In this document: positions 1,394-16,477 of the stretch, in pieces
Layout: each line of letters opens with the position of its first letter
Position numbering within the stretch: the first letter of the stretch is position 1
Assembly (NCBI GenBank): GCA_946965045.2
Contig: OX337239.1
Location: 558,001 to 622,000 of the forward strand
Reading direction: 5' to 3'
Source: Epithemia pelagica
Lineage: Eukaryota > Protista > Bacillariophyta
DNA: 64,000 nt
Program-made: the position numbers and the translations under genes
Notes under the pieces: model-generated
The model's input: the letters and a program-made list of their open reading frames with translations, nothing else
Database searches by the model: none
What the model was told of the DNA's origin: nothing

Positions 1394-1487
1394 TTATGCG
1401 TACAAATGTGTCCCAATAGATGCATGGCAATGACTTTGTTGCGGGTGATCATAATGATGAGATAGATGTCGCAATGCCAGAGCTTGG
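1394..1487 (-). pseudogene. Putative 3' end of the ankyrin-repeat gene, separated by copia element 1
   Basis: Removing 1488-6895 plus one CTTGG copy joins ...GVPAIH-Q-ALALRHL... in frame to a TAA at 1394-1396; depends on the frameshifted reading near 7040. Confidence 0.4.
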
Positions 1488-2243
1488 TGTTAGGATTCTC
1501 ACCTTTAACTAGGTGGTGGTGGAATCTACAACACATCGACTGATGCTAGTATTTTATGGCATCCGATGACATTTGTGTAAAAGTGAGAAAAGAATGACGG
1601 CATGCTCGCGGACCTTTAATTTTGGCCAAGGCATGCTCGCAATGCACGCGCTATCGGCGACCGCTCGGATATTGACTATGGCCCATCACGTGCGCGCCCA
1701 ATATTCTCAAGCGCGCGCAATCAAGATCCGAGTGAGCACCTCCACGACTTACCTCAACGACCTAAGTAATCAAAGCACGAATCACGATCACGCGAGACCA
1801 TATTTCCATTCCCACAATTCCAAGAATGCAATCAACAACGCGCCAAGAAAACTACCTATATCACAACAAAGCAAGAGCTGTTGGCATTGGTATATGATAT
1901 ACAACTGCATATACTTTCAATACAACAATGCAGGTCTACTCCAACCATTTGAGGACCTATCACACCAGATCCATGGCCGTATACAAGAGCCAGGACCTCG
2001 ACCTTCATCAAACACCTTAGTTAGTAATCATCTCACAATCATTAATATCACCATTTTAACACTCATCTTAAGACTAACCTCTTATCAGTGGACCGACTGC
2101 CCCCACCCACGGCGGACTTCGACTTGCAACTCTTCTCTGACCCGTGGAGGATTGTTGTATCGGTTGGTGATCGATTGTCGGCTCAGCGAGCCTTTTACCC
2201 AACTACCTATTACCCTTCTGAATTCTCAATGAGAGTTCTGCTA
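1488..2243 (+). repeat. 5' LTR of element 1 (TGTTAG...CTGCTA)
   Basis: Direct repeat of 6140-6895 (offset 4652); no difference seen by eye and the 219-aa spurious ORF translates identically in both. Confidence 0.95.
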
Positions 2244-2257
2244 GATTAACAGTCTCA
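2244..2257 (+). promoter_or_regulatory. Primer-binding site GATTAACAGTCTCA of element 1
   Basis: Immediately follows the 5' LTR; the same 14-mer follows the 5' LTR of element 2 (8175-8188) while the sequence after it diverges. Confidence 0.75.
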
Positions 2258-2628
2258 TCGCTCATTGCCCTGCAGTCGCATTGGAAAGCATACTTACCCA
2301 TCTACATTGAGTACAGATTGAGCTACACCAACAAACAAGAGTTAGAGGACAAAGCTACCCAACCCAACAACAGGGCCAGCCTGGCTAAGGCTAGGGTCAT
2401 CAACCCTCTCCTATTCCAGGACCTCAAGCTGGACCAGGACTTCGTGCAACTACCTTCCCAATACTCACCTGACCAGTACTTTGCTGAGGACTACGAGCAA
2501 GACGAGGAAGCTACCATTATTCCTGACTCCCCGGTTCAACTCGATCACCGCAACGAGTCCGGAAGTGACCAAGGATAAGTATCTTTAAGAAGTTTCCACA
2601 ACAAACCAGAGACGAAACCGAGTTCCGC

Positions 2629-2747
2629 ACATCCGGGTTCCCAGCACAACACACATCCGGGTTCTGACATCCGTGGCACACACGTGGTACATCCGGGTTC
2701 AGATCACACCACACATTAAATAAACAACGAACCAACCATATACTACC
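2629..2747 (+). promoter_or_regulatory. Conserved pre-gag cis block with three ACATCCGGGT motifs (element 1)
   Basis: ACATCCGGGT at 2629, 2653 and 2689, then CACACATTAAATAAAC...CGAACCAACC before the ATG; same arrangement at 9047-9310. Confidence 0.6.
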
Positions 2748-5522
2748 ATGGATCCAACATACCCCAAGACACCTTCTCTTCCTTCTAACGACTCAGTACC
2801 GCCTGACATATCAGATACACAAGTGTTCAATCATATCACCCAGCATCTATTTGAATGTGATGAAGAACGAGCTCAAGCCCTCCATCAATGGATAAAACAT
2901 AGTGGTTTCGAACACGTTCTGAATGTCATCGACTATCTTGCAGTCAATCCAGAAAAGAATATCAAGGACCTTGGACAATACAAGTATGGGAACAAGACGA
3001 TGGATCTGAAGACATTTACAAGGCATCAACTGAAGATCCTAGCACATTGGTCACGAGAACAAACCTCAACCCTGCAGCAGTCTGATTTACCTCGCTCTAC
3101 CTGGTTGAACCTCACCAAGGCCAATTATGATCATTGGAGAATCAATGCAGACTTCACCAAGCTCCGTCTGAACCAAGGTTGCATTTCGTCATTTCGTTTA
3201 GCAAAAAGAGAGGTGCTACGTCTTAACAACTACATCTCCAATCTTCGTCTCGATGATTCATGGCACGGCACAACCTATCAGTTTCTTCTCCACTTTCAAC
3301 ACCAATTCCATCTTCTCGACAATCTGGGATCAATGTTTGATCACATTCCCGGCCACTCCACTAGGATGACCTTCCTGATGAAAGCCGTTGAAAAGGTACC
3401 TGATTTACGACAAGTCAACATCTTGTCTGGTGCAAAGACACTTTGTTATCAATCATATTTCCGTCTTCTCCTTGATGCCGCATATGATCATGACCAAGCA
3501 ACTCGAGCACCAAAGTCTAACCGACTTAAGCATACCAAGCAATGCGACTTTCAATATGATCAAGATTTTGATATCAAAGATCTATCACCCAAAGAAAAAC
3601 ACCGCATGATTAAGAGAACTAACGTGAAGACCAAGGAATCATCTTCGCTTTGTCCAAAGATCAGTCTTCCAAGAAATCTATGGAGTAAACTCAACGACAA
3701 TGGTCGTCAAGTAATCATTGCGTACAACAAGTCTACCCAGAATGCGTCATCAACAACTGCATGCATGGAACAGACGCATACTCTTGACATTGATCCGGAA
3801 CCTGATCCCGACCCTGGTCATGCATGGATTGACGACATGATTCAAGATGATTCCCAAGACCATCAAGATAATTTCTTTGATCTGATTACCCGGTTGGTTC
3901 CACAAGTTGTGACCAATATTGATGTCAATCATCCAACATCTGATCTTGCTAATTTGGTGTCCAATACCAAGGCAACATCCATCCCTAATGATTGCCTCGA
4001 GAACAACAACTGTAAACAGAAAGTTGAGATATCTCGACATCTGCTCTCTCGCATGTCTACTTTCTCCGGTGACAATCAATTGACTGGCTATAATCATTGG
4101 TATCTTGATCCCATGCAAGATACGGCACCTTCTTCGAGGACTGTTGAAAATGATGGTAATCCGAATGATGCTTTTGGGAAGTATACCAATCGTGTTGTCT
4201 GTAACCTCAACCTTCTCTTGGATTTACCTTACGATCATGGACCTGATACGCCTTCCTTCTACACACCCATACTTGGAGAGTACTGTTCCAAATCATACCT
4301 CCAAGATCAGAACATGGCTGAGAACCGTTATCAGACCGCTAAGAGGACAACATCCGTCGTGACCATTTCGGGCCATATCCCTCTTGAGATCCTCAATGGT
4401 CGCCCACCCGGCATTACCCACCCTCTTTTCTTCCTTATTTGGGACAAGGCCCCCTACTTTACCGAATCATATGCCCTCTCCCACCGTCCCTACCGTCCCT
4501 ACCCTCCCTCTTTTGTCACGACACTTGGCTACTGGCTTGTTTTTGCCCCTCCTATTGGTGATACTTTGTCTCTGGACACTCAAACCCTTTGTTACTCTGC
4601 CATTCTTCATGATGCACCCACGCCACCCAGCAACCTTTGTGTGGATACCTCTTCAGGGGAGGAATCGCTTCCAAGTGAACCCAACGGCAAGCAAGCTGAC
4701 ATTGTTTTCATTTGTAGCAAAGGTGAAGATCCATCCACGCAAATTCCAACGATCAAACATGATGACACTATTGGACAACCTTTCCTTGTTTATGATCCAG
4801 AGGAAAATGGGGAGCAACGACAACCGTATAATGGGGAGCAACCACAACCGTGTCTTATAAGATGCGTCATTGATTTAGAACAAGATGCTCTCAAGCAAGA
4901 AGACTGTATCAAGTACACTTTCTGCAAATCCATTTCCGACATTGACAAGATAATTTCATACCGTCAACATATGGAATACATCAAACAGGACAACCAAGCA
5001 CAGGAAACTGAAGATGACGTTTTCCAGTTCAGAGACGTTGTTGCAGATCAAGAACCGCCAAGTATTAGCAACAATCCTGACTACAAAAGAAGTCACTGTA
5101 ATATACTTGTTGATTGGGAGACTGGGGAGATGATCTATGAGCCTCCGTCACTCATGGTAAATGATACCTATGCCAAGAAACATGATCTATTAAATGAACT
5201 TGGATGGAAACATCTCAAGCGTTTTGTCAAGACCAGTAAATGCCTTGTTCAAGCTGCCAAACAGCAGTCAAGAATCAAGCAAGTCTGTCGTTCCATCAAG
5301 TACAAGTTTGGTTATCAAGTTTCAATGACAAATGAAGAATTAGTTGTTTTGTTAGACAAGCAACATGGTAAAAGAAAGTGGCACGACACTACTGAAGTTG
5401 AGCTCTTTCAGGCTTCACAGATCCAATCCCTCACAAAAGTCAAGGATTGCGTTCAAGCTCAGTTCAAGAGAAGGGAAATGATAAATGCATCACCAGAAGA
5501 GTATCACAAGAACAAGATTTGA
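2748..5522 (+). CDS. Degenerate Gag-Pol remnant (924 aa); protease and integrase cores deleted
   Basis: Segments align colinearly and in one frame with the 1877-aa polyprotein (LAKREVLRL, CYQSYFRLLLDAAYDHDQAT, RVVCNLNLLLDLPYDHGPD, AENRYQT, VDWETGE); the DRGAN protease motif and the integrase catalytic Asp region are missing. Confidence 0.75.
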   Translation: MDPTYPKTPSLPSNDSVPPDISDTQVFNHITQHLFECDEERAQALHQWIKHSGFEHVLNVIDYLAVNPEKNIKDLGQYKYGNKTMDLKTFTRHQLKILAHWSREQTSTLQQSDLPRSTWLNLTKANYDHWRINADFTKLRLNQGCISSFRLAKREVLRLNNYISNLRLDDSWHGTTYQFLLHFQHQFHLLDNLGSMFDHIPGHSTRMTFLMKAVEKVPDLRQVNILSGAKTLCYQSYFRLLLDAAYDHDQATRAPKSNRLKHTKQCDFQYDQDFDIKDLSPKEKHRMIKRTNVKTKESSSLCPKISLPRNLWSKLNDNGRQVIIAYNKSTQNASSTTACMEQTHTLDIDPEPDPDPGHAWIDDMIQDDSQDHQDNFFDLITRLVPQVVTNIDVNHPTSDLANLVSNTKATSIPNDCLENNNCKQKVEISRHLLSRMSTFSGDNQLTGYNHWYLDPMQDTAPSSRTVENDGNPNDAFGKYTNRVVCNLNLLLDLPYDHGPDTPSFYTPILGEYCSKSYLQDQNMAENRYQTAKRTTSVVTISGHIPLEILNGRPPGITHPLFFLIWDKAPYFTESYALSHRPYRPYPPSFVTTLGYWLVFAPPIGDTLSLDTQTLCYSAILHDAPTPPSNLCVDTSSGEESLPSEPNGKQADIVFICSKGEDPSTQIPTIKHDDTIGQPFLVYDPEENGEQRQPYNGEQPQPCLIRCVIDLEQDALKQEDCIKYTFCKSISDIDKIISYRQHMEYIKQDNQAQETEDDVFQFRDVVADQEPPSISNNPDYKRSHCNILVDWETGEMIYEPPSLMVNDTYAKKHDLLNELGWKHLKRFVKTSKCLVQAAKQQSRIKQVCRSIKYKFGYQVSMTNEELVVLLDKQHGKRKWHDTTEVELFQASQIQSLTKVKDCVQAQFKRREMINASPEEYHKNKI

Positions 5523-6146
5523 ATCTATCTTGTAAAACATGATGATAGCCGCCCAGCACTTCTCATCACAGACGAGGCTTTTACCAAAGAACCGGTTGAG
5601 GCAATCTTTTTGTGTACTACTTCCATTCACAACTTCCATACAACCACCTGTCTTGGGATTCTCAATGATATGGATATATGGGGAGCAAAAGTTGGAATTG
5701 CACACGACCCGGAAGCTTTATCTGGAGAGAAGATCTTGATAGTTGCAAGACAAGAACTCAAGGAATCAGGTCACATCTTGATTACGCACAAGGCCTCCAA
5801 GGGATTAAAATCTTCAGGAGCATGTCGGCGTGACTGTTTCTTTGACACCCCAATTGATATGGATTTGTCACCAACTAAAGCAGATCCCAATGTTTGGATG
5901 AAGAAGGCACCTGGGGAGCATAGCTCAAAGGGCACCGATAAGACCTACCAACTGAAGAATGATGAACTGATTACTTATTGCCTGAGATATCCCTATGAGA
6001 GCGTCCGGGATACATTGTCAGTAAGCATTGGAAATTCTCGAAAGTATGGACCACGTTCAAGATCATATTCTTCTGGGGAGGAAACGTTCAGAAGCATGAC
6101 AAGGAAAATAACAATCCTCACTCGACGAATTGTGGGGAGTGTTAGG
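5523..6146 (+). pseudogene. Truncated RT/RNase H remnant of element 1
   Basis: The same frame continues after the TGA at 5520-5522 (TKEPVE, DIWGA, GLKSSG, ADPNVWM); YVDD and most of RNase H are missing; the terminal SKHW...CGEC* lies in a shifted frame. Confidence 0.85.
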
Positions 6147-6895
6147 ATTCTCACCTTTAACTAGGTGGTGGTGGAATCTACAACACATCGACTGATGCTA
6201 GTATTTTATGGCATCCGATGACATTTGTGTAAAAGTGAGAAAAGAATGACGGCATGCTCGCGGACCTTTAATTTTGGCCAAGGCATGCTCGCAATGCACG
6301 CGCTATCGGCGACCGCTCGGATATTGACTATGGCCCATCACGTGCGCGCCCAATATTCTCAAGCGCGCGCAATCAAGATCCGAGTGAGCACCTCCACGAC
6401 TTACCTCAACGACCTAAGTAATCAAAGCACGAATCACGATCACGCGAGACCATATTTCCATTCCCACAATTCCAAGAATGCAATCAACAACGCGCCAAGA
6501 AAACTACCTATATCACAACAAAGCAAGAGCTGTTGGCATTGGTATATGATATACAACTGCATATACTTTCAATACAACAATGCAGGTCTACTCCAACCAT
6601 TTGAGGACCTATCACACCAGATCCATGGCCGTATACAAGAGCCAGGACCTCGACCTTCATCAAACACCTTAGTTAGTAATCATCTCACAATCATTAATAT
6701 CACCATTTTAACACTCATCTTAAGACTAACCTCTTATCAGTGGACCGACTGCCCCCACCCACGGCGGACTTCGACTTGCAACTCTTCTCTGACCCGTGGA
6801 GGATTGTTGTATCGGTTGGTGATCGATTGTCGGCTCAGCGAGCCTTTTACCCAACTACCTATTACCCTTCTGAATTCTCAATGAGAGTTCTGCTA
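6140..6895 (+). repeat. 3' LTR of element 1
   Basis: Direct repeat of 1488-2243, preceded by the PPT and followed by TSD CTTGG. Confidence 0.95.
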
Positions 6896-7391
6896 CTTGG
6901 TGAATAGCCGGAACACCAATGCTTTGCTCTTCCAGGTCTATGCAAACTTCGAGGCCCTTTTCATAGTCCGACTCGTCATCTGAGTTAAAGTCGTAGTGCT
7001 GTGGGCAGTTTTTCGCATCCAAATACGCCAGGATATGCTTCAGCCTTATCATAGGTCCTTCCCTCCCAGGGACATCCATTCTCATGAGCATATTGGAGAC
7101 AGTCTACATGACCTCCTTCGGCTGCAGCTGCACACGTCCTTTCGTCCCATGGACATTGCATTTCATGAGCATACCGCAGAGTCTCCAAATTCCCTGCTTT
7201 GGCGGCTCCTGCACATGTTCCTGCATTTACGGGACAGCCTTGTTCCAAGAGATATTTCAAGGTCTCCAAATGTCCATTGTACGCAGCCACTCGGCAGACA
7301 TCTTCGTCCCACGAACAGCCAAATTCGTGGGCAAACTTGAGACAGTCCAATTCACCGCTGAGAGCGGCATTACGGTAGGTATATCGATCCC
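6896..7391 (-). pseudogene. Middle/C-terminal fragment of an ankyrin-repeat gene, between the two copia insertions
   Basis: Repeats such as CAAAAEGGHVDCLQYAHENGCPW; continues in frame from ...LEKGCPWD (15722) into RYTYRNAALSGELDCLK once element 2 is removed. Confidence 0.88.
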
Positions 7392-8174
7392 TGTTAGAAT
7401 TCTCACCGTCTATGGTGGTTAGATTCTACATCTCATCGATTCCCCATGTCACATAGCCTCGTGCTATCGCATCATGCCCTCTAGCTTCGAGCTATGTTTC
7501 CTAGCTTCGCGCTATATCGACCTATATTTCTTCGCAAATCATGAAAAGTGAGAATAGATTGACGAACTCACTCTCAAGACTAAACTGGGTCGTGCGGTAT
7601 TACAACGGACATAAATTTGGCCGTTGCTCGGACATTATACTAACGCCCTAAGCGTACGCGCCCGAAATCATCGAGCGCGCCCAAGCGACATCCGAGCGCT
7701 ATCGGCATCTATCCGATCCAACGGTCTAAGTATCCCAAGCACGACACACGATCACGCGAGACCATATTTCCATTCCCACAATCTCCAAATTGTCAACAAG
7801 CTGCGCGCCATGAAAACAACTATGCCAACCCAAAGCAAGAGCTGTTGACCCTGTATATGTTATCCGCCCACATATACATGTCATATACATCACATGAATC
7901 AACTCCAACTATTCCAAACCTGTTGCCGCCAAGAACCTATGACACATGACCCTTGGCAGGACCGAACATTTCACGTAGACCTATCGTAGTAATCAACACA
8001 CAATCTAACAATATCACCATTTATCACATCCTCTTTTGTGTCCCGACTATCCTTCTGATAGACTTCGACTTGCTTGCTTCTCTGACCCTGAGAAGCTTGT
8101 ATCGGTTGGTGACCTACCTGATTGTCTGCTCTACCGAGCATCAATGTCCCTACGATTCAGAAAGAATTGTAACA
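7392..8174 (+). repeat. 5' LTR of element 2
   Basis: Direct repeat of 14939-15721 (offset 7547), no difference seen; shares blocks such as GATCACGCGAGACCATATTTCCATTCCCACAAT with the element 1 LTR. Confidence 0.96.
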
Positions 8175-8188
8175 GATTAACAGTCTCA
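8175..8188 (+). promoter_or_regulatory. Primer-binding site GATTAACAGTCTCA of element 2
   Basis: Adjacent to the LTR end TAACA; identical to 2244-2257. Confidence 0.75.
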
Positions 8189-8210
8189 AAGCTTATTTCC
8201 TTGTGGTTTC

Positions 8211-8990
8211 ATGGATACTAACGAGATTATCACTCCTGTACGACAGATCTATCGAGCCAACCTGCATCCCGGGCAGCCCGATACCCTGGTGCAGCAGGAA
8301 CTGGTGCCGACGCCGAAGGCAGCCAACACATCGGTCAACATCTCCGTCGACAGTTCCAACAGCAACCCATTCGAGACTCCAACCCAGCCTCACGCTCCGA
8401 TCCCTGCGCCGTTGCTTCGGCCCCCGAGTCCGCCTCGTCGGCTCGTCCCTTCTCGATCCCGTCGTACCACCCGGTTGATTGCTGATCATATCAAGTACTT
8501 CCGCCAACCAACTTGTTCGACCTTCGATCCCGAGATCATCCGTGGGGAGACCCAGATCGAACGCCAGTTCCAATCGGTGACCCACATCGTCGACCAAGAA
8601 GACATTGACCGTCTGAACGACCAACTTCACCGCTCTCCGAGGCGTCGCCTCATCTTTGCCGCCCTCTCGGGCAACCCCATCCGTACTGTCCACCTCCGCT
8701 TCCTAACCTTCGAGCGCCCAACTGGATACTACAATACCATCTACGTCGTGAACGCGACGACTTGCCCTCTGCCTCCTAACGTTGTACGCCTAGATAACTA
8801 CGTTGCCTACATCCACGAGGTCCATACCATCGAGGACCATCGTGCAACTATCTACCCTTTGCGTACCGAGGTCGAGAACCACCTGGCTGAAGGTGATACC
8901 CCTTCTTCTGTTGCTTGTGCTGCCCCATCTGAGCCTGGAAGCGACTCTGATCATTCGGAAGAGGGTGAGGATTCGGAGACCGAAGCTTAA
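8211..8990 (+). CDS. Extra upstream ORF (259 aa) inside element 2, unknown function
   Basis: ATG-initiated sense ORF between PBS and gag; Pro-rich N-terminus, globular-looking middle, acidic tail. Confidence 0.6.
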   Translation: MDTNEIITPVRQIYRANLHPGQPDTLVQQELVPTPKAANTSVNISVDSSNSNPFETPTQPHAPIPAPLLRPPSPPRRLVPSRSRRTTRLIADHIKYFRQPTCSTFDPEIIRGETQIERQFQSVTHIVDQEDIDRLNDQLHRSPRRRLIFAALSGNPIRTVHLRFLTFERPTGYYNTIYVVNATTCPLPPNVVRLDNYVAYIHEVHTIEDHRATIYPLRTEVENHLAEGDTPSSVACAAPSEPGSDSDHSEEGEDSETEA

Positions 8991-9046
8991 TTACTCATAG
9001 TTAACTCCCGTCCTCTCAAAACCTTTCCAAGACTTAAACTCAACGC

Positions 9047-9310
9047 ACATCCGGGTACCCTTGGTCGCACAACACGCCACACATTCCCGTCAAATCGCGA
9101 AAATTCGGCGAAAATTTGTTGAAACTCGGCGAAAATTTGTCGAAATCAACGGAAATTTCCAGGAGTCGCACATCACAACACACATCCGGGTATCACATAC
9201 GTGGTACATACGTGGCACACGTGGTACATCCGGGTTCACATCACATCACACATTAAATAAACCACATCACACCGCACATTAAATAAACATCGAACCAACC
9301 AAATAACACC
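9047..9310 (+). promoter_or_regulatory. Conserved pre-gag cis block with three ACATCCGGGT motifs (element 2)
   Basis: ACATCCGGGT at 9047, 9182 and 9226; CACGTGGTACATCCGGGTTCA and CACATTAAATAAAC shared with 2629-2747. Confidence 0.6.
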
Positions 9311-12300
9311 ATGGATCCTCAATCACCCAAGACACCTACGACTCCTAAGGGAGAAGATAACCAAGACAATGTCTCGGACACAGACCTATTCGACCACATC
9401 ATATTTACTGTCTGCCAATTCTTCACCAAAGAAAGGGCCGACTACTTAATGAAGTGGATGAAATACCATGGTTTTGAGAACATTACCCATGTTATCTCGT
9501 ATATGCAAACTAATACCGAGGAATCCATGAAGGAACTGACACAATACAAGGTCAACAAACAGACACATGATCTACAAGGCCCCACAAGACAGCAGATCAA
9601 GCTCTTGGCTTATTGGGCCACATACAAGACCAATGAAATTCAAGACGAGCTATCCAATAGCGACTGGATGAACCTAACGAGGAAAGAGTTCAACACTTGG
9701 AGGATCAACACAGATTTCTCTAAGGGACCACCTAGCCAAGTCCCAGTCTCGCCAATGAAGTCACCGTCATCTGTGAAATCTGTCAGCACAGTTACTGCCG
9801 CATCCCAATCTCAACAAGACCTTACAGCATTCAGAAAGGGAACTAAGCGCGACGCAACTGCATATGAGGTATTCAAGGATGAACGATACTACGATTCATT
9901 CTGGCGTGTATTCAAGACTACAGCTAAGGCTCAAGGCCTATCCAACGTTCTGAATTTCAAATACACACCACCCCATGATGATGAGTATGCCGAAGAACTT
10001 TTTCAAGAGCAACAAGTATTTCTTTACTCCGTTCTTGTCCGTATCATTCAGACTGACCAAGGTCGAGCCTATGTACGTGAACATGAACATGATGAAGATG
10101 CGCGTGCCGTATTGCAGAAGTTACACTCTTTGCATACCGAATCCGACCTAGCAAAGCGAGAAGTCCTCCGCTTAACCAACTACATTTCCAATCTACGTCT
10201 TGACGACACATGGCGCGGAACAACACGTCAATTTCTTCTACACTTTCAAGAGCAGCTACGTTTGCTAGACAATTTAGTGACATTGTCTGATCGCATCCCT
10301 GATCATACCAGGATGACCTTCCTCATGCAAGCTGTAGAAAAGGTACCTGATCTCCGCCGAGTCAAGATCTTGGATAATGTGGTGAACACCAAATCCGGTG
10401 CAAAATCCCTTTGCTATCAATCATACTTCCGTCTCCTTCTAGACGCAGCTTATGACCATGATCAAGCAACCCAGTCATCTGTTCATAATCGCCGTCGACA
10501 TGTCAAACAACATGAATCACTATATGGCCAAGATACAGATGCTGACATAACCTCACAAGAGGATATGGAGTATCATGTCCACAACACCAAAGCGACATCT
10601 GAATCTCCATCCGCTTCGTCCAAGGTTAGTCTACCGCGTGACCTATGGTTCAAACTTTCTGAAGAAGATCGCAAGTTGATCATTGAGTATAACAAGATGA
10701 TTCAAGCACCTTCATCAACAACACCGAGGACAGTGCAAACACATGCCCTCGACATTGATCCGGAACCTGATCCTGACCCCAACCAAGTTGCATCTGATGA
10801 CGACTCACCTGGCGTAGTCCCTGAGCATTCAGATGATTCAGATCCGGTTACACAATTTATCAACCAAGCCATGACGACTGATATCAATCACCCGGCAACT
10901 GACCTGACTAGTGTTCTTTCTAACGCAGGACATGTTCCACGCTATCTGTTTTCCAGGAAATCTACTTTACCAGGGAATCAATTGATTGACCGCGGTGCTA
11001 ATGGAGGACTTGCTGGTTCTGACATGCGCATCCTTTCTAAGACTGGCCGCCATATCACTATTGTGGGTATTGATAACCATGAACTTACTGGACTTCCTGT
11101 CGTCACATGTGCCACAAAGTTTGAGACCAATGATGGACCTATTGTCGGCATCTTCAATGAATATGCTTATTATGGGAAGGGCTTATCTATCCATGCTCCT
11201 GGTCAATTCGAGCATTTCGGACTTGCTGTTGATGAACGATCTGTTAAAGTTGATGGTAAACAACGCATCACTACACTTGATGGTCGTGCCATACCCCTTC
11301 ACATCAAGGATGGGTTAGCCTACATCCACTCCTTGGGTATCCCCAGCGACGATGACATGGATACCTTACCTCAGATCATCTTCACGTCACCCGACACATG
11401 GGATCCTGGTGTTCTGGACCATTCGTATTCTCCCACACTCTCTGACAATGATCCTGATTGGAAACACGTCAAGACTGATGGTAGTTTGTCAAACCATCCA
11501 TATGACAACTATGGGGAGTACACTGATCGTGTTGTCTGTAACCTCAATCTCCTTTTGGATCTCCCATACGATCATGGACCTGACGACGCACCCTTCTTTT
11601 CTATCTATGCTGACGCCGAAGGTAATGATCCTACACTTCATGCCTCTGTCCACCGTCGTTACCAGGAAGCGTATGACTGGAAGAAGTTCCGTCCATTCTT
11701 TGGTTGGCAATCTGAAGATGTTATTGCCGATACGTTCAAGCACACTACACGTAATGGTAGCATTACTTTTGACCACGACACCCTCAAGAAACATTTCAAG
11801 GCTCGCAATCCGGTCCTTAATATACCTCGACGCCATGAACCCGTTGCTACTGACTCGGTTTTCTCCGACACCCCTGCTGTTGACCATGGCGGTAAAGTCG
11901 CACAAATCTTTGTTGGTCGAGATACTCTGGTTACTGATATCTATGGGATCAAGTCAACCAAACAGTTTGTCAATACTCTTCAGGACAACATCCGGTTTCG
12001 TGGTGCCATGGAGACTCTTATCAGTGATGGTGGTTCATCTCTCATCTCTCAAAAGGTTAAAGACATTCTTCGCACTTTGCTTATTGGGGAGTATCGATCT
12101 GAACCTTATCATCAACACCAGAATAAGGCTGAAAACCGTTACCAGACCGTTAAACGTATGACCAACGCTCTCATGAATGCCACTGGTTGCCCTGCCAACA
12201 CCTGGCTTCTTTGCCTTGAGTATGTCTGTGACTTATTGAACCATACGTCATCACCCACCCACTCCGGTCGCACTCCTCTTGAGGCTCTCTCCGGACGCCC

Positions 12301-14944
12301 ACCCGACATTACTCATCTCTTGTTCTTTCCTTTCTGGGATGAGGTTTACTACCGTGTCGACCCCGCTGAACCCACTTCCGGTTCATATCCATCTTCTTCT
12401 GATGAGAAACTTGGCCACTGGGTTGGTTTTGCTCACAACGTTGGTGATTCTTTTACTTGGAAGATTCTCACCCAGGATAACCAGATAATCTACCGTTCTG
12501 CCGTTCGCCGTGTTGCATCCACTACACCTAACCTACGTGTGGATCGACCTTCAGGGGAGGATTCGTCTGAGAAGGATGACAATGATAAGCAAGCTGACAC
12601 TGTCTTCATTCGCAGTGATAGTGAAGATCCATCCAAACCAATGCCCACGATCGATTTTGACGACATGATAGGACGCACATTCCTATGCGACACAGAAGAA
12701 AATGGGGAGCGACACCGTGCACGTGTCATCAAACGAGTCATTGATCTTAATGAAGAAGCAACGAAACAGGAAGAACGTGTCAAGTACATCTACCGAAAGA
12801 CAAATTCTGATGTTGATGAGATGATATCCTATAATCAACTCATGGAGTATATCGAACGAGATAACCAAGCTCAAACCTCTGGAGATAATCTTTTCAGGTT
12901 CAGGGACGTCATTGCCCATCAAGGCCCACTGAACACAACTGATCCAGATTACAAGGGGAGCAAATATAATTTGCTTGTTGATTGGGAAACTGGGGAGACT
13001 ACCTATGAACCTTTATCACTCATCGCCAATGATGATCCGATCACTGTAGCAATTTATGGAAAGAAACATGATTTACTCAACGAACCTGGATGGAAGCATT
13101 TGAAACGTTATGTCAAAACAAGCAAACGTCTCATTCGAGCAGCCAAACAGTCAAGGATTAAACAAGTTCACCGTTCCGTCAAGTATAAGTTTGGATTCCA
13201 AGTACCACGCAATTATGAGGAAGCTGTCGCTCTTGATAAACAACATGGCAACACAAAGTGGCAAGATGCAACAGAATTAGAATTGTCACAGATCCAGTCC
13301 TACAAGACATTCAAGGATTTTGGGAAAGCCATCTTCATTAAAGGGAAAGTATCCAATGCACCTGAAGGATATCATAAGATACGTGTACATCTTGTCTTTG
13401 ACGTAAAACATGATGGACGACATAAAGCAAGACTTGTCGCAGATGGACATCTCACAAAAGAACCTGTTGAGACAATCTATTCAGGTGTTGTTTCCATTCG
13501 CAACCTCCGCATTGCCTTATTCCTGGGTACTTTGAATGACTTGGAAATATGGGGAGCAGATATTGGAAATGCATATCTGGAAGCCTTGACAGGGGAGAAA
13601 ATTTTCATTGTCGCAGGACCTGAATTCAAGGAATTAGAAGGTCACATCCTGATTATATACAAGGCACTTTATGGATTGAAGTCATCAGGCGCACGCTGGC
13701 ATGATGTCTTATTCGATGTTTTGACAGACATGGGATTTTCACCAAGCAAAGCAGATCCGGATATCTGGATGAGGAAAGCACCTGGAGAAGACTGTTACGA
13801 ATACATTGCCGTATACGTTGATGACTTAGCCATTATTTCTACTGATCCTGGGAATATCTGCAAGATCCTGAAGGAGAAATACAACTTCAAACTCAAAGGA
13901 GATGGACCTATTGATTTCCACTTGGGATGTTGTTACACCAAGGATTCTGATGGAACATTAGTAGCAGATCCAAGACGCTACATTGGTAAGATGATGGACA
14001 CTTTCGAACGAATCTTCAAGGAGAAACCCAAGAAAGCCAAAACACCTCTTATTGGTGGAGACCATCCTGAATTGGATGATTCTGAACTCCTTGATGAAGA
14101 AGGTACTAGCCATTTCCAAACTCTGATTGGACAACTCCAATGGGTGATCACTATTGGTCGTTTCGACGTCTTCACCGCTACAATGACGCTATCACGCTTT
14201 CGTGCTGCTCCGAGGAAAGGACATCTTGATAGAGCCAAGCGTATCTATGGATACCTTGCACATCTCCCAGAAGGCGCAATCAGATTTAGGATTGGAGAGC
14301 CCGATTATTCAAGTCTTCCTACCCAAGAATTTGATTGGACTCGCACTGTCTATCCGAATGCAAGTGAACGTATTCCTGAAGACTGCCCAACACCTCTTGG
14401 CCGCTATGTTACCACAACTCATTATGTTGATGCCAATCTCATGCATGACATAGTCACTGGTAAATCCGTCACTGCTGTCCTACATTTGTTGAACGGAACA
14501 CCTATTGACTGGTACAGCAAGAGACAGAGCACGGTGGAAACTGCTACCTATGGATCCGAGTTTGTGGCTGCAAGGACAGCAATAGATCAGATTACAGAAT
14601 TACGACATTCTCTCCGCTACCTTGGAGTACCTATCCGAGAGCGAAGTTACATGTACGGAGATAACAGATCTGTTGTGCTCAATGCAACCGTACCTCATTC
14701 CATACTATCCAAGAGACACCATCTTCTGTCATACCACCGAGTTCGTGAAGCCATCGCAGCAAAGTATGTTGCATTCTACTGGAAAGATGGAAAGACCAAC
14801 CCTGCCGATATCCTTAGCAAACATTGGGATTTCGTATCTATTTGGCCCATGCTCAAGCCATTGTTGTTTTGGAAAGGAGAAGTTCAAGACCTCAACAAAT
14901 CCAATGATGACAAGGCTGAAACGACGAGTTGTGGGGAGTGTTAG
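9311..14944 (+). CDS. Gag-Pol polyprotein (1877 aa), copia domain order
   Basis: Protease IDRGANGG; integrase TDSVF/SDGG/AENRY; RT ADIGNAYL, LYGLKSSG, YVDD; RNase H YVDAN, GSEF, GDN, NPADILSK; no CCHC or HHCC zinc finger recognised. Confidence 0.96.
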   Translation: MDPQSPKTPTTPKGEDNQDNVSDTDLFDHIIFTVCQFFTKERADYLMKWMKYHGFENITHVISYMQTNTEESMKELTQYKVNKQTHDLQGPTRQQIKLLAYWATYKTNEIQDELSNSDWMNLTRKEFNTWRINTDFSKGPPSQVPVSPMKSPSSVKSVSTVTAASQSQQDLTAFRKGTKRDATAYEVFKDERYYDSFWRVFKTTAKAQGLSNVLNFKYTPPHDDEYAEELFQEQQVFLYSVLVRIIQTDQGRAYVREHEHDEDARAVLQKLHSLHTESDLAKREVLRLTNYISNLRLDDTWRGTTRQFLLHFQEQLRLLDNLVTLSDRIPDHTRMTFLMQAVEKVPDLRRVKILDNVVNTKSGAKSLCYQSYFRLLLDAAYDHDQATQSSVHNRRRHVKQHESLYGQDTDADITSQEDMEYHVHNTKATSESPSASSKVSLPRDLWFKLSEEDRKLIIEYNKMIQAPSSTTPRTVQTHALDIDPEPDPDPNQVASDDDSPGVVPEHSDDSDPVTQFINQAMTTDINHPATDLTSVLSNAGHVPRYLFSRKSTLPGNQLIDRGANGGLAGSDMRILSKTGRHITIVGIDNHELTGLPVVTCATKFETNDGPIVGIFNEYAYYGKGLSIHAPGQFEHFGLAVDERSVKVDGKQRITTLDGRAIPLHIKDGLAYIHSLGIPSDDDMDTLPQIIFTSPDTWDPGVLDHSYSPTLSDNDPDWKHVKTDGSLSNHPYDNYGEYTDRVVCNLNLLLDLPYDHGPDDAPFFSIYADAEGNDPTLHASVHRRYQEAYDWKKFRPFFGWQSEDVIADTFKHTTRNGSITFDHDTLKKHFKARNPVLNIPRRHEPVATDSVFSDTPAVDHGGKVAQIFVGRDTLVTDIYGIKSTKQFVNTLQDNIRFRGAMETLISDGGSSLISQKVKDILRTLLIGEYRSEPYHQHQNKAENRYQTVKRMTNALMNATGCPANTWLLCLEYVCDLLNHTSSPTHSGRTPLEALSGRPPDITHLLFFPFWDEVYYRVDPAEPTSGSYPSSSDEKLGHWVGFAHNVGDSFTWKILTQDNQIIYRSAVRRVASTTPNLRVDRPSGEDSSEKDDNDKQADTVFIRSDSEDPSKPMPTIDFDDMIGRTFLCDTEENGERHRARVIKRVIDLNEEATKQEERVKYIYRKTNSDVDEMISYNQLMEYIERDNQAQTSGDNLFRFRDVIAHQGPLNTTDPDYKGSKYNLLVDWETGETTYEPLSLIANDDPITVAIYGKKHDLLNEPGWKHLKRYVKTSKRLIRAAKQSRIKQVHRSVKYKFGFQVPRNYEEAVALDKQHGNTKWQDATELELSQIQSYKTFKDFGKAIFIKGKVSNAPEGYHKIRVHLVFDVKHDGRHKARLVADGHLTKEPVETIYSGVVSIRNLRIALFLGTLNDLEIWGADIGNAYLEALTGEKIFIVAGPEFKELEGHILIIYKALYGLKSSGARWHDVLFDVLTDMGFSPSKADPDIWMRKAPGEDCYEYIAVYVDDLAIISTDPGNICKILKEKYNFKLKGDGPIDFHLGCCYTKDSDGTLVADPRRYIGKMMDTFERIFKEKPKKAKTPLIGGDHPELDDSELLDEEGTSHFQTLIGQLQWVITIGRFDVFTATMTLSRFRAAPRKGHLDRAKRIYGYLAHLPEGAIRFRIGEPDYSSLPTQEFDWTRTVYPNASERIPEDCPTPLGRYVTTTHYVDANLMHDIVTGKSVTAVLHLLNGTPIDWYSKRQSTVETATYGSEFVAARTAIDQITELRHSLRYLGVPIRERSYMYGDNRSVVLNATVPHSILSKRHHLLSYHRVREAIAAKYVAFYWKDGKTNPADILSKHWDFVSIWPMLKPLLFWKGEVQDLNKSNDDKAETTSCGEC

Positions 14945-15721
14945 AATTCTCACCGTCTATGGTGGTTAGATTCTACATCTCATCGATTCCCCATGTCACA
15001 TAGCCTCGTGCTATCGCATCATGCCCTCTAGCTTCGAGCTATGTTTCCTAGCTTCGCGCTATATCGACCTATATTTCTTCGCAAATCATGAAAAGTGAGA
15101 ATAGATTGACGAACTCACTCTCAAGACTAAACTGGGTCGTGCGGTATTACAACGGACATAAATTTGGCCGTTGCTCGGACATTATACTAACGCCCTAAGC
15201 GTACGCGCCCGAAATCATCGAGCGCGCCCAAGCGACATCCGAGCGCTATCGGCATCTATCCGATCCAACGGTCTAAGTATCCCAAGCACGACACACGATC
15301 ACGCGAGACCATATTTCCATTCCCACAATCTCCAAATTGTCAACAAGCTGCGCGCCATGAAAACAACTATGCCAACCCAAAGCAAGAGCTGTTGACCCTG
15401 TATATGTTATCCGCCCACATATACATGTCATATACATCACATGAATCAACTCCAACTATTCCAAACCTGTTGCCGCCAAGAACCTATGACACATGACCCT
15501 TGGCAGGACCGAACATTTCACGTAGACCTATCGTAGTAATCAACACACAATCTAACAATATCACCATTTATCACATCCTCTTTTGTGTCCCGACTATCCT
15601 TCTGATAGACTTCGACTTGCTTGCTTCTCTGACCCTGAGAAGCTTGTATCGGTTGGTGACCTACCTGATTGTCTGCTCTACCGAGCATCAATGTCCCTAC
15701 GATTCAGAAAGAATTGTAACA
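14939..15721 (+). repeat. 3' LTR of element 2
   Basis: Direct repeat of 7392-8174; followed by TSD ATCCC. Confidence 0.96.
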
Positions 15722-16477
15722 ATCCCACGGACAGCCCTTTTCGAGAGCATATTGGAGACAGTCTAAATTGCCACTTTCGGCAGCCGAGGATGCCAAACGG
15801 GAATCCCACTCGCAGCCTTGCTCGTACGTGTACACGAGGATGTGGAAATGTCCGTGCCGGACTGCCGCCATGGCCGTATTGCACTGCAGGGACGAGCCAT
15901 TGTCGTACATGTATCGGATACAATCCAAATGTCCGTTTTTGATTACATTGATAGTAGCCTGTGAGTCCCAAGAAAGACCATGTTCATGAGCCCACTGCAA
16001 GACGCTCAAGCATCCCTGTCTCGCAGCAGCCACGCAGGCTGTGTGCTTCCATCGCCGCATTATACCGTGCTTGTCATCTTTTTGTGGCAAGACAAGCTGA
16101 TACCAATACTTGGCACAGGAGAGACTTGCAAATACGTTCTTGGCGTGTGTTTTCTTGACTCCAGGTTGAACAAACCGGCCCCTGTGTTTGAGCCGTATGG
16201 AACGACGGTCTTTGGGTCGGAGTGTCGAAAAGTAGTGCCGATACAGTTTTTGAAATTGCCGATTTACTCCCGCGACAAAAATATAATGTCCTGGGCCAAC
16301 AAAGGAGAACATATGCACCCCAAGGTTTTCGTTTTCCAACAGCTTCAAGAGCGGATTCTGAGTAGTCTCGTTGTCGTCGTTCATTGTGTTAGCCTTGCCC
16401 TGATTGGCTTGCTTTGCCCTCTTTGCGACGGGAGGGTGCAGATCCGAGCTGTTCTTGTCGTCTTCTTCCTTGGACAT
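15722..16477 (-). pseudogene. 5' part of the ankyrin-repeat gene interrupted by element 2
   Basis: First ATG at 16477 (MSKEEDDK); F-box-like FSFVGPGHYIFVAGVNRQF stretch then ankyrin-type repeats (AAESGNLDCLQYALEKGCPWD) ending at the TSD. Confidence 0.88.

Follow-up and report, generated by a model that had tools for sequence, protein, structure and literature searches.

Why should a retrotransposon that has lost its own replication enzymes keep a very long reading frame open? The question is raised by a stretch of 64,000 nucleotides from the diatom Epithemia pelagica (assembly GCA_946965045.2, contig OX337239.1, positions 558,001 to 622,000 of the forward strand), which is called the window below. 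A Ty1/copia-type long terminal repeat (LTR) retrotransposon with ends TG...TA occupies positions 1488-6895 of the window, and both this element and its family are called E1 here. A second element, E2, which is autonomous, starts 496 bp downstream of it. An earlier note on this DNA had supposed that translation of the dead E1 polyprotein is under selection, and the other copies in the genome bear this out: the family has at least 36 copies, and among those aligned there is no inherited stop where about 12 would be expected, and the inherited insertions and deletions (indels) are all multiples of 3. While the family spread, selection kept open one frame of about 1138 codons, which starts at the Gag ATG and stops shortly after the 3′ LTR begins. 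In our joint reading of the data, to which we give a probability of roughly 0.6, E1 is a helper-dependent family whose frame is kept open by selection since full-length translation makes E1 RNA a good template.

Selection on the open frame of E1

The genome (60.5 Mb in 23 contigs) has more than ten silicon-transporter genes, which identify the host as a diatom. Searched at the DNA level, it yielded 22 full-length E1 copies with 94-100% identity. Perfect 5-bp target site duplications (TSDs) flank 21 of them, and the LTR pairs within these copies have 0-6 differences in 756 nt. With protein searches, about 36 loci (at least 36) were found on many contigs with amino acid (aa) identities of 84-100%, and 24 of 36 have an open frame of 1106-1150 codons. 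The open reading frame (ORF) of 17 of the 22 full-length copies encodes 1105-1142 aa and runs from the same ATG to the same position in the 3′ LTR; three more diverged copies are also open in three out of three cases, which makes 20/25 in all.

The window copy is a very recent insertion of this non-autonomous family. Its two LTRs are the same in 756/756 nt and CTTGG stands at both flanks, as had been noticed before, and its ORF indeed has no stop over 924 codons and goes on in the same frame past one TGA to 6164, where TAG is found at 6162-6164. At the TGA (codon 925), the 24 other aligned copies have CGA (12), CAA (11) or CGG (1). Since the TGA is a private CGA>TGA change, C to T at a CpG, the 924-aa ORF that the earlier note took for the product is a truncated private variant, and the true product of the E1 family has about 1138 aa. 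The window copy has probably ceased by now to be a source of new copies. Of the five private stops in the family, two (at family codons 925, window 5520-5522, and 1098) are CGA>TGA at CpG; deamination of methylated cytosine in silenced copies would produce such stops.

Indels in the ORF of the family comprise 13 in-frame events of 3 to 27 nt and two frameshifts. Six ORF indels are common to 3-10 copies, and all of them are multiples of 3, whereas the frameshifts (+10 and -7) are each private to one copy. Only 2 of the 11 indels in the LTRs and leader are multiples of 3, which differs from the ORF with Fisher P = 0.0009.

Substitutions were counted over 25 copies, and a variant was called shared when present in at least two of them. 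The natural copy L002 served as codon-frame reference, variants were polarised by the major allele of each column, and the null distribution for stops was obtained by scattering the same base changes over the ORF in 5000 spectrum-preserving permutations. No stop was found among 292 shared substitutions, against 11.9 expected, and zero was never reached in the 5000 permutations. The 348 private variants include 5 stops, against 14.5 expected. LTRs offer a calibration of this number: 40 mismatches over 22 copies correspond to about 90 post-insertion substitutions in the ORF, and then to about 3.6 stops. Because the five private stops match this prediction, the observed damage is the decay expected after insertion, and about 550 changes that come from lineages that kept being copied include no stop. 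Frequent frameshifts or stops in other copies had been named as the sign to look for against selection; those found are all private, and about two thirds of copies are open. As a rough comparison, the open share of 24/36 in E1 equals that in the E2 family, where 72 of 107 copies have an open frame of about 1900 codons.

Without selection, all copies would have to be young offspring of one lucky open master, with the frame open by chance. Such an origin fits the small differences between LTR pairs, which indicate that many insertions are recent. However, copies differ from each other by up to 15% in protein, far above the divergence of their own LTRs, and the shared substitutions and shared indels counted above leave the frame intact throughout. 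Moreover, a sister family, E3, has an open frame too, at a synonymous divergence (dS) of 0.37. The explanation is refuted at P < 0.001 and hardly deserves further credit.

Some copies have histories of their own. Comparison of L002 with L020 and others gave LTRs that are 99% identical and an ORF dS of 0.09. Because 99%-identical LTRs coexist with this ORF divergence, the E1 family is a mosaic, probably formed via recombination between co-packaged RNAs, and a single tree is only an approximation. L013 (G000:C10:565552-573969) is the sole copy without a TSD, and its 3′ flank opens with the primer binding site (PBS) block GATTAACAGT; a tandem array of the form LTR-internal-LTR-internal, or else recombination among copies, may account for this. 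In L031, a 155-nt piece of the LTR start is duplicated beside the LTRs (1426-1580 and 6239-6393).

Amino acid constraint and the act of translation

Amino acid constraint along the ORF was estimated by a codon model on 20 open E1 copies (kappa 3.5). Pairwise ratios of nonsynonymous to synonymous divergence (dN/dS, omega) by the NG86 method were 0.4-0.8 and were set aside, since this method ignores transition bias; estimates from the codon model and from permutations were used instead. Constraint is weak overall and clear only in aa 1-140, 448-538 and 701-925 (Table 1). Omega was 1.0 in aa 141-447, 1.3 in aa 539-700 and 0.96 in aa 926-1061, a remnant of reverse transcriptase (RT), none of them significant, and it was above 1 in the tail (aa 1062-1138, P = 2.6e-5). 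The three constrained segments make up about 40% of the ORF, and the ratio of nonsynonymous to synonymous changes (N/S) among their shared variants was 1.31 against 2.71 expected (P < 0.001). In the remaining segments N/S was near expectation, yet their shared variants have 0 stops against 6.3 expected (P = 0.001). The tail (window 5931-6161) retains homology to the part of E2 RT that directly follows the excised YVDD loop. Its omega was 4.9 by the codon model, and by count it has 28 N and 4 S.

The sister family E3 (locus L034 and proteins P0007 and P0011; at least four loci) has a protein of 1417 aa. E3 retains the whole Gag region and the presumed protease region, and it has in common with E1 the deletion of the integrase core, the deletion of the counterpart of E2 aa 955-982, the loss of the YVDD loop and the 3′ truncation. 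LTRs of the two families are 90% identical over 459 nt. Because E3 has the same integrase and RT deletions, the E1 lineage is old. Between E1 and E3, dN is 0.25, dS 0.37 and omega 0.69 over aa 448-1061, with omega 0.46-0.66 in aa 448-925, and synonymous sites are saturated in the Gag region. In the RT remnant and tail, omega is about 1, and 170 differences include 0 stops against 5.4 expected (P = 0.0024). Two further proteins, P0004 and P0005, are E1-like (79% identity) and reach 1080 aa through a further in-frame deletion. Thus the series from E2 downward is 1877 > 1417 > 1138 > 1080 aa, and it is always open to the LTR. At locus L034, positions 1-2809 belong to an E2-family copy (98.7% identical to E2 of the window), and a 5′-truncated E3 copy starts at 2810 and extends to 6750; either E2 inserted into E3 or the two were otherwise joined. 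A chance ATG in the E2 LTR end creates a spurious 1100-aa ORF there.

These relations bear on whether the protein is needed, or only its translation. If passage of ribosomes to the 3′ end of the RNA were the only thing selected, by evasion of nonsense-mediated decay (NMD) or by translation-linked stability, the protein would be functionless and any sense codon would do. An overall omega of 0.91, not different from 1, is in accordance with this, and so are the segments aa 141-447, 539-700 and 926-1138, where omega is about 1 or higher and shared stops are nevertheless missing. The RT remnant and tail that stay open between E1 and E3, the termination of E1, E2 and E3 ORFs only inside the 3′ LTR, and the presence of a UPF1 gene in the genome point in the same direction. 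However, the three constrained segments (omega 0.46-0.70) are under purifying selection within the family, aa 448-925 have an omega below 1 between E1 and E3 as well, and the start context ACCATGGATCC at the ATG is conserved between E1 and E2. We consider it rather unlikely that openness is all that is kept.

A more restricted form of this idea is possible, and we put it forward tentatively. Over much of E1, the act of translation may be kept and not the protein, and about 680 neutral functionless sense codons, dead RT included, would then make a 'ribosome runway' to the 3′ LTR, likely for escape from NMD. The in-frame deletion series would, in that case, display this constraint shaping the shrinkage of a parasite.

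According to our joint reading, E1 RNA would serve well as a template for new copies only when translated over its full length. The N-terminal Gag-derived protein may preferentially act on the RNA that encodes it, as for the intracisternal A-particle (IAP) element I-delta-1, and after a premature stop a long 3′ part would remain untranslated and make the RNA a target of NMD. What is selected is which copies are replicated further, so the advantage has to accrue to the encoding RNA, and translation probably benefits the element in cis, through hitch-hiking or NMD evasion.

Lost enzymes, candidate helpers and shared signals

The E2 ORF matches Pfam RVT_2 (E = 6e-25) and, weakly, rve, with rve before RVT_2. 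No Pfam domain was found in the E1 ORF 2748-5522, and the Ty1/copia order of Pol in E1 is assigned by homology only, through its collinearity with E2. The proteins align in collinear blocks with 42-57% aa identity, in which E1 aa 1-138, 151-445, 449-506 and 506-924 correspond to E2 aa 1-138, 280-558, 703-764 and 922-1359, and the E1 frame after the TGA corresponds to E2 aa 1365-1493. E2 aa 139-279, 141 aa of the Gag region, are not present in E1. Deletions in E1 also removed E2 aa 559-702, which hold LIDRGANGG and are presumed protease by position and motif only; E2 aa 765-921 with two Asp of the integrase DD35E, whose Glu remains as AENRY; E2 aa 955-982; and the YVDD loop together with all of E2 from about aa 1590 on, RNase H included. 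The Asp of RT motif A was substituted (ADIGNAY in E2, AKVGIAH in E1). The claim that the enzymes are dead holds, with the Asp pair of integrase gone, the loop and motif-A Asp of RT gone, and the presumed protease region deleted. Judged from these alignments, E1 is a non-autonomous family that has lost its own replication enzymes.

The interior of E1 is strongly diverged from its neighbour, as described before. DNA identity over aligned E1-E2 codons is 53-67%, dS is saturated and omega is about 0.2. E2 as the parent of E1 was ruled out by the saturated dS, and neutral E1-E2 evolution, which a few DNA blocks of high identity had suggested, was excluded by the same dS and omega. The earlier note had also taken the in-frame indels against E2 as a sign of selection. 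The frame is kept, but the comparison with E2 cannot show selection on it, because these lineages split long ago and their divergence was mostly under purifying selection; alone, the in-frame indels say little.

Domain and fold searches added little. Pieces covering Gag, protease, linker and the chromo-like stretch had no meaningful Pfam match at E ≤ 5, no Pfam gag family matched E1 or E2, profile searches of the Protein Data Bank (PDB) gave nothing meaningful, and an ESM Atlas feature search gave no usable match. For the presumed protease region no profile or model confirmed the label, and the AlphaFold2 (AF2) model of this region of E2 (20 relatives) was unusable, with a predicted local distance difference test score (pLDDT) of 32. 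A chromo-containing remnant, as proposed earlier, finds no support: no Pfam chromo match at E ≤ 5 was found in E1 or E2, no such chain appeared in the profile search of PDB sequences, and the AF2 model of E1 aa 700-924 (35 aligned relatives) had a pLDDT of 34 and was unusable. The stretch has a motif resemblance only (LVDWETGE..YEP).

Which elements may copy E1? The E2 family has at least 107 scored copies with 98-100% aa identity in the RT/RNase H part (954 first-look candidates); it is very abundant and young, and is the likely helper family. Three autonomous sister families have 78-98% protein identity to E2 and only about 50% to E1. Since E1 is without enzymes of its own, related autonomous families such as E2 would have to provide protease, integrase and RT for its copying, and the sequences are most readily read as a case of trans-mobilisation by E2 or its sisters. 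Signals in cis agree with it: the PBS, the LTR start, the polypurine tract (PPT) region and a 50-nt block in the leader are close to those of E2 (Table 1). LTR 3′ ends differ, being ..CTA in E1 and ..ACA in E2. The ..CTA end of E1-family LTRs (window 2236-2243 and 6888-6895) is not the usual ..CA, and copies L006 and L013 have ..CCA. The E2 leader of 1137 nt holds a 259-codon ORF (window 8211-8990) between PBS and polyprotein ATG, which is missing from the E1 leader (504 nt). Diverged 62-nt repeat units (65-81% identical) flank E2 at 7064-7368 and 15723-15784, with ORFs on both strands, and the site into which E2 inserted was apparently a repetitive gene or array.

Table 1. Features of E1 and its neighbour E2, in window coordinates
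Feature	Position	Strand	Remarks
5′ TSD CTTGG	1483..1487	+	same 5 nt at 6896-6900
5′ LTR, 756 nt, TG...TA	1488..2243	+	100% identity to 6140-6895; first 16 nt 15/16 against E2 LTR
PBS-like block GATTAACAGTCTCA	2244..2257	+	14/14 against block after E2 5′ LTR, 8175-8188
Leader block directly 5′ of ATG, candidate packaging or other cis signal	2679..2728	+	94% to E2 9216-9265; coding DNA 53-67%
Window-copy ORF, 924 codons	2748..5522	+	ends at private TGA (5520-5522); CGA, CAA or CGG in the other 24 aligned copies
N-terminal Gag-region segment, aa 1-140, purifying selection	2748..3167	+	within-family omega 0.46, P = 0.005 against omega = 1; aligned to E2 aa 1-138
aa 448-538, inter-domain block (NRVVCNLNLLLDLPYDHGPD) and integrase 'E' remnant (AENRY)	4089..4361	+	omega 0.52, P = 0.01; integrase-core deletion sits within it; 4175-4246 has 86% nt identity to E2
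In-frame 24-nt tandem duplication (NGEQRQPY/NGEQPQPC)	4806..4853	+	units 4806-4829 and 4830-4853, 22/24 nt identical; not in E2 or E3 family
aa 701-925, integrase-RT linker, mild constraint; 'chromo-like' stretch of the earlier note	4848..5522	+	omega 0.70, P = 0.02
Continuation of family ORF, dead RT remnant and tail	5523..6164	+	stop TAG 6162-6164, 25 nt inside 3′ LTR; Asp>Lys in motif A, no YVDD loop; omega near 1 or above; open in both E1 and E3 families
PPT region CGACGAATTGTGGGGAG (GGGGAG tract)	6123..6139	+	16/17 against E2 14922-14938; identical in E3
3′ LTR	6140..6895	+	identical to 5′ LTR over 756 nt
3′ TSD CTTGG	6896..6900	+	matches 5′ TSD
Autonomous element E2	7392..15721	+	identical 783-nt LTRs; TSD ATCCC; ORF 9311-14944, 1877 codons

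The 8-aa tandem duplication described before was found again as the 24-nt repeat listed in Table 1.

Recombination between lineages is suggested by E3, and it would be expected if their RNAs are packaged together. The Gag-protease half of E3 is nearer to E2 than its 3′ half is (69-81% and 67% nt identity, respectively), and against E1 the synonymous sites are saturated in Gag and at dS 0.37 in the 3′ part. Such mixing, the cis signals in common with E2 and the constrained N-terminal Gag-region segment could also be explained if the E1 protein were a working structural protein that joins helper particles, so that both partners gain, and plants offer precedents for it (PMC11302176, PMC2410132). 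However, E1 is without 141 aa of the Gag region, the rest of this region (aa 141-447) has an omega of 1.0 within the family, and a benefit to the helper alone would not purge stops from E1 lineages. A mutualist supplier of this kind is improbable.

The earlier note had further offered Ty1 p22 as an analogue, that is, a truncated Gag-containing protein acting in trans as a brake, which poisons particle assembly and sets copy number. For this there is the analogy that a Gag-derived protein without part of Gag would be made from many copies. On the other side, selection among E1 lineages favours being copied, and lowering helper activity would cut the spread of E1 itself; both E2 and E1 have many insertions with identical or near-identical LTRs, and no brake is evident; and p22 comes from an internal start and is without the Gag N-terminus, which E1 keeps and constrains. 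This analogy is not borne out by the data, and we think that such a role is very unlikely.

The reading in which a helper-dependent E1 is translated for its own benefit has several points against it. For the ORF as a whole, omega does not fall significantly below 1, so that most of the protein may be functionless. The choice of constrained segments was made on the same data on which they were tested, which weakens the N/S contrast and not the stop counts. Gag and protease assignments are positional, and Pfam finds nothing in E1 and only RVT_2 and weak rve in E2. The nearest autonomous families, from which a helper would come, are only 50-58% identical to E1 in protein. NMD in this host, together with its rule of long 3′ untranslated regions, is assumed. 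In addition, the window copy has a stop and yet identical LTRs. Unless this stop dates from the final round of replication or from right after insertion, a stop-bearing source may thus have remained mobile. Finally, the sequencing runs in which E1 occurs are metagenomes and sets of DNA-like contigs, with records of up to 509 kb, and they speak for presence, not transcription. Short E1-like pieces occur at low depth in biofilm and marine metagenome runs X4-X8, and benthic biofilms may thus be a habitat of the host or of a close relative.

E1 among known non-autonomous elements

Our results show that in a diatom, helper-dependent retrotransposons can stay selected for translatability long after they lost every enzyme; the evidence is from population genetics within one genome. 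The graded in-frame deletion series separates two constraints, the need for a protein and the need for translation. This makes testable the question of why some non-autonomous LTR elements, including mouse IAP I-delta-1 and plant Quinta and Athila, out-compete their helpers, and the host here is a unicellular alga that may be transformable. In practice, E1/E3-type ORFs of 1100-1400 aa match no Pfam domain and seem to lack a name in public protein sets, and they can be mistaken for host genes in annotation. Elements of this kind have been described in plants and mice, and as far as we found not in diatoms: a literature search for diatom non-autonomous copia elements found no description, and the CoDi paper has no mention of non-autonomous elements or chromodomains.

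Ty1 p22/p18 is made from the autonomous yeast Ty1 by an internal start, is without the Gag N-terminus and blocks particle assembly in trans. E1 resembles it in encoding a Gag-derived protein of a Ty1/copia-type element, and differs in keeping and constraining the N-terminus and in selection that favours its own copying. BARE2 with BARE1 in barley, LARDs and TRIMs are non-autonomous LTR elements mobilised by a partner with the same cis signals. In BARE2 the gag start is gone, and LARDs and TRIMs carry no ORF, whereas the ORF of E1 is maintained.

Closer to E1 are coding families in plants. Athila elements with gag or gag+env, RLG_Quinta (GAG+DUF1), Sabrina/WHAM and TR-GAG are long-lived families without pol that retain ORFs (PMC2410132, PMC11302176), and the ORFs of non-autonomous Athila elements are under purifying selection (PMC2410132). 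These families have PBS and LTR termini in common with their autonomous partners and recombine with them (PMC2410132, PMC11302176), and a mutual benefit with the helper has been proposed for Quinta/Cereba (PMC11302176) and for coding non-autonomous Athila (PMC2410132). E1 is similar in keeping an ORF and in having cis signals in common with an autonomous partner. However, the plant families are Ty3/gypsy elements with a recognisable gag, or gag+env, that dropped pol, whereas E1 has one unbroken frame through dead integrase and RT to the LTR, with large parts free of amino acid constraint. Unlike TR-GAG and other gag-only elements, E1 is also without a recognisable GAG domain (no Pfam gag match), and its ORF runs on through the remnants of integrase and RT.

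The nearest parallel for the proposed effect of translation is IAP I-delta-1, a mouse class II endogenous retrovirus. This element has a 1.9-kb in-frame gag-pol deletion and needs Gag and Pol of full-length relatives (PMC6466679). Its retrotransposition is promoted in cis when the fusion ORF is translated, and elements with the deletion have been highly successful (PMC6466679, citing Saito et al. 2008). Like IAP I-delta-1, E1 is non-autonomous, and its deletions fuse gag and pol remnants into one ORF (20/25 copies, about 1138 codons). The differences concern both lineage and history. IAP is a mammalian betaretrovirus-like element with one defined deletion; E1 is a diatom Ty1/copia element with at least four large and many small in-frame deletions, and it has several related daughter families (1417, 1138 and 1080 aa). 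Moreover, the cis effect of translation is established for IAP, whereas for E1 such an effect is indicated indirectly, by inherited variation that contains no stop or frameshift.

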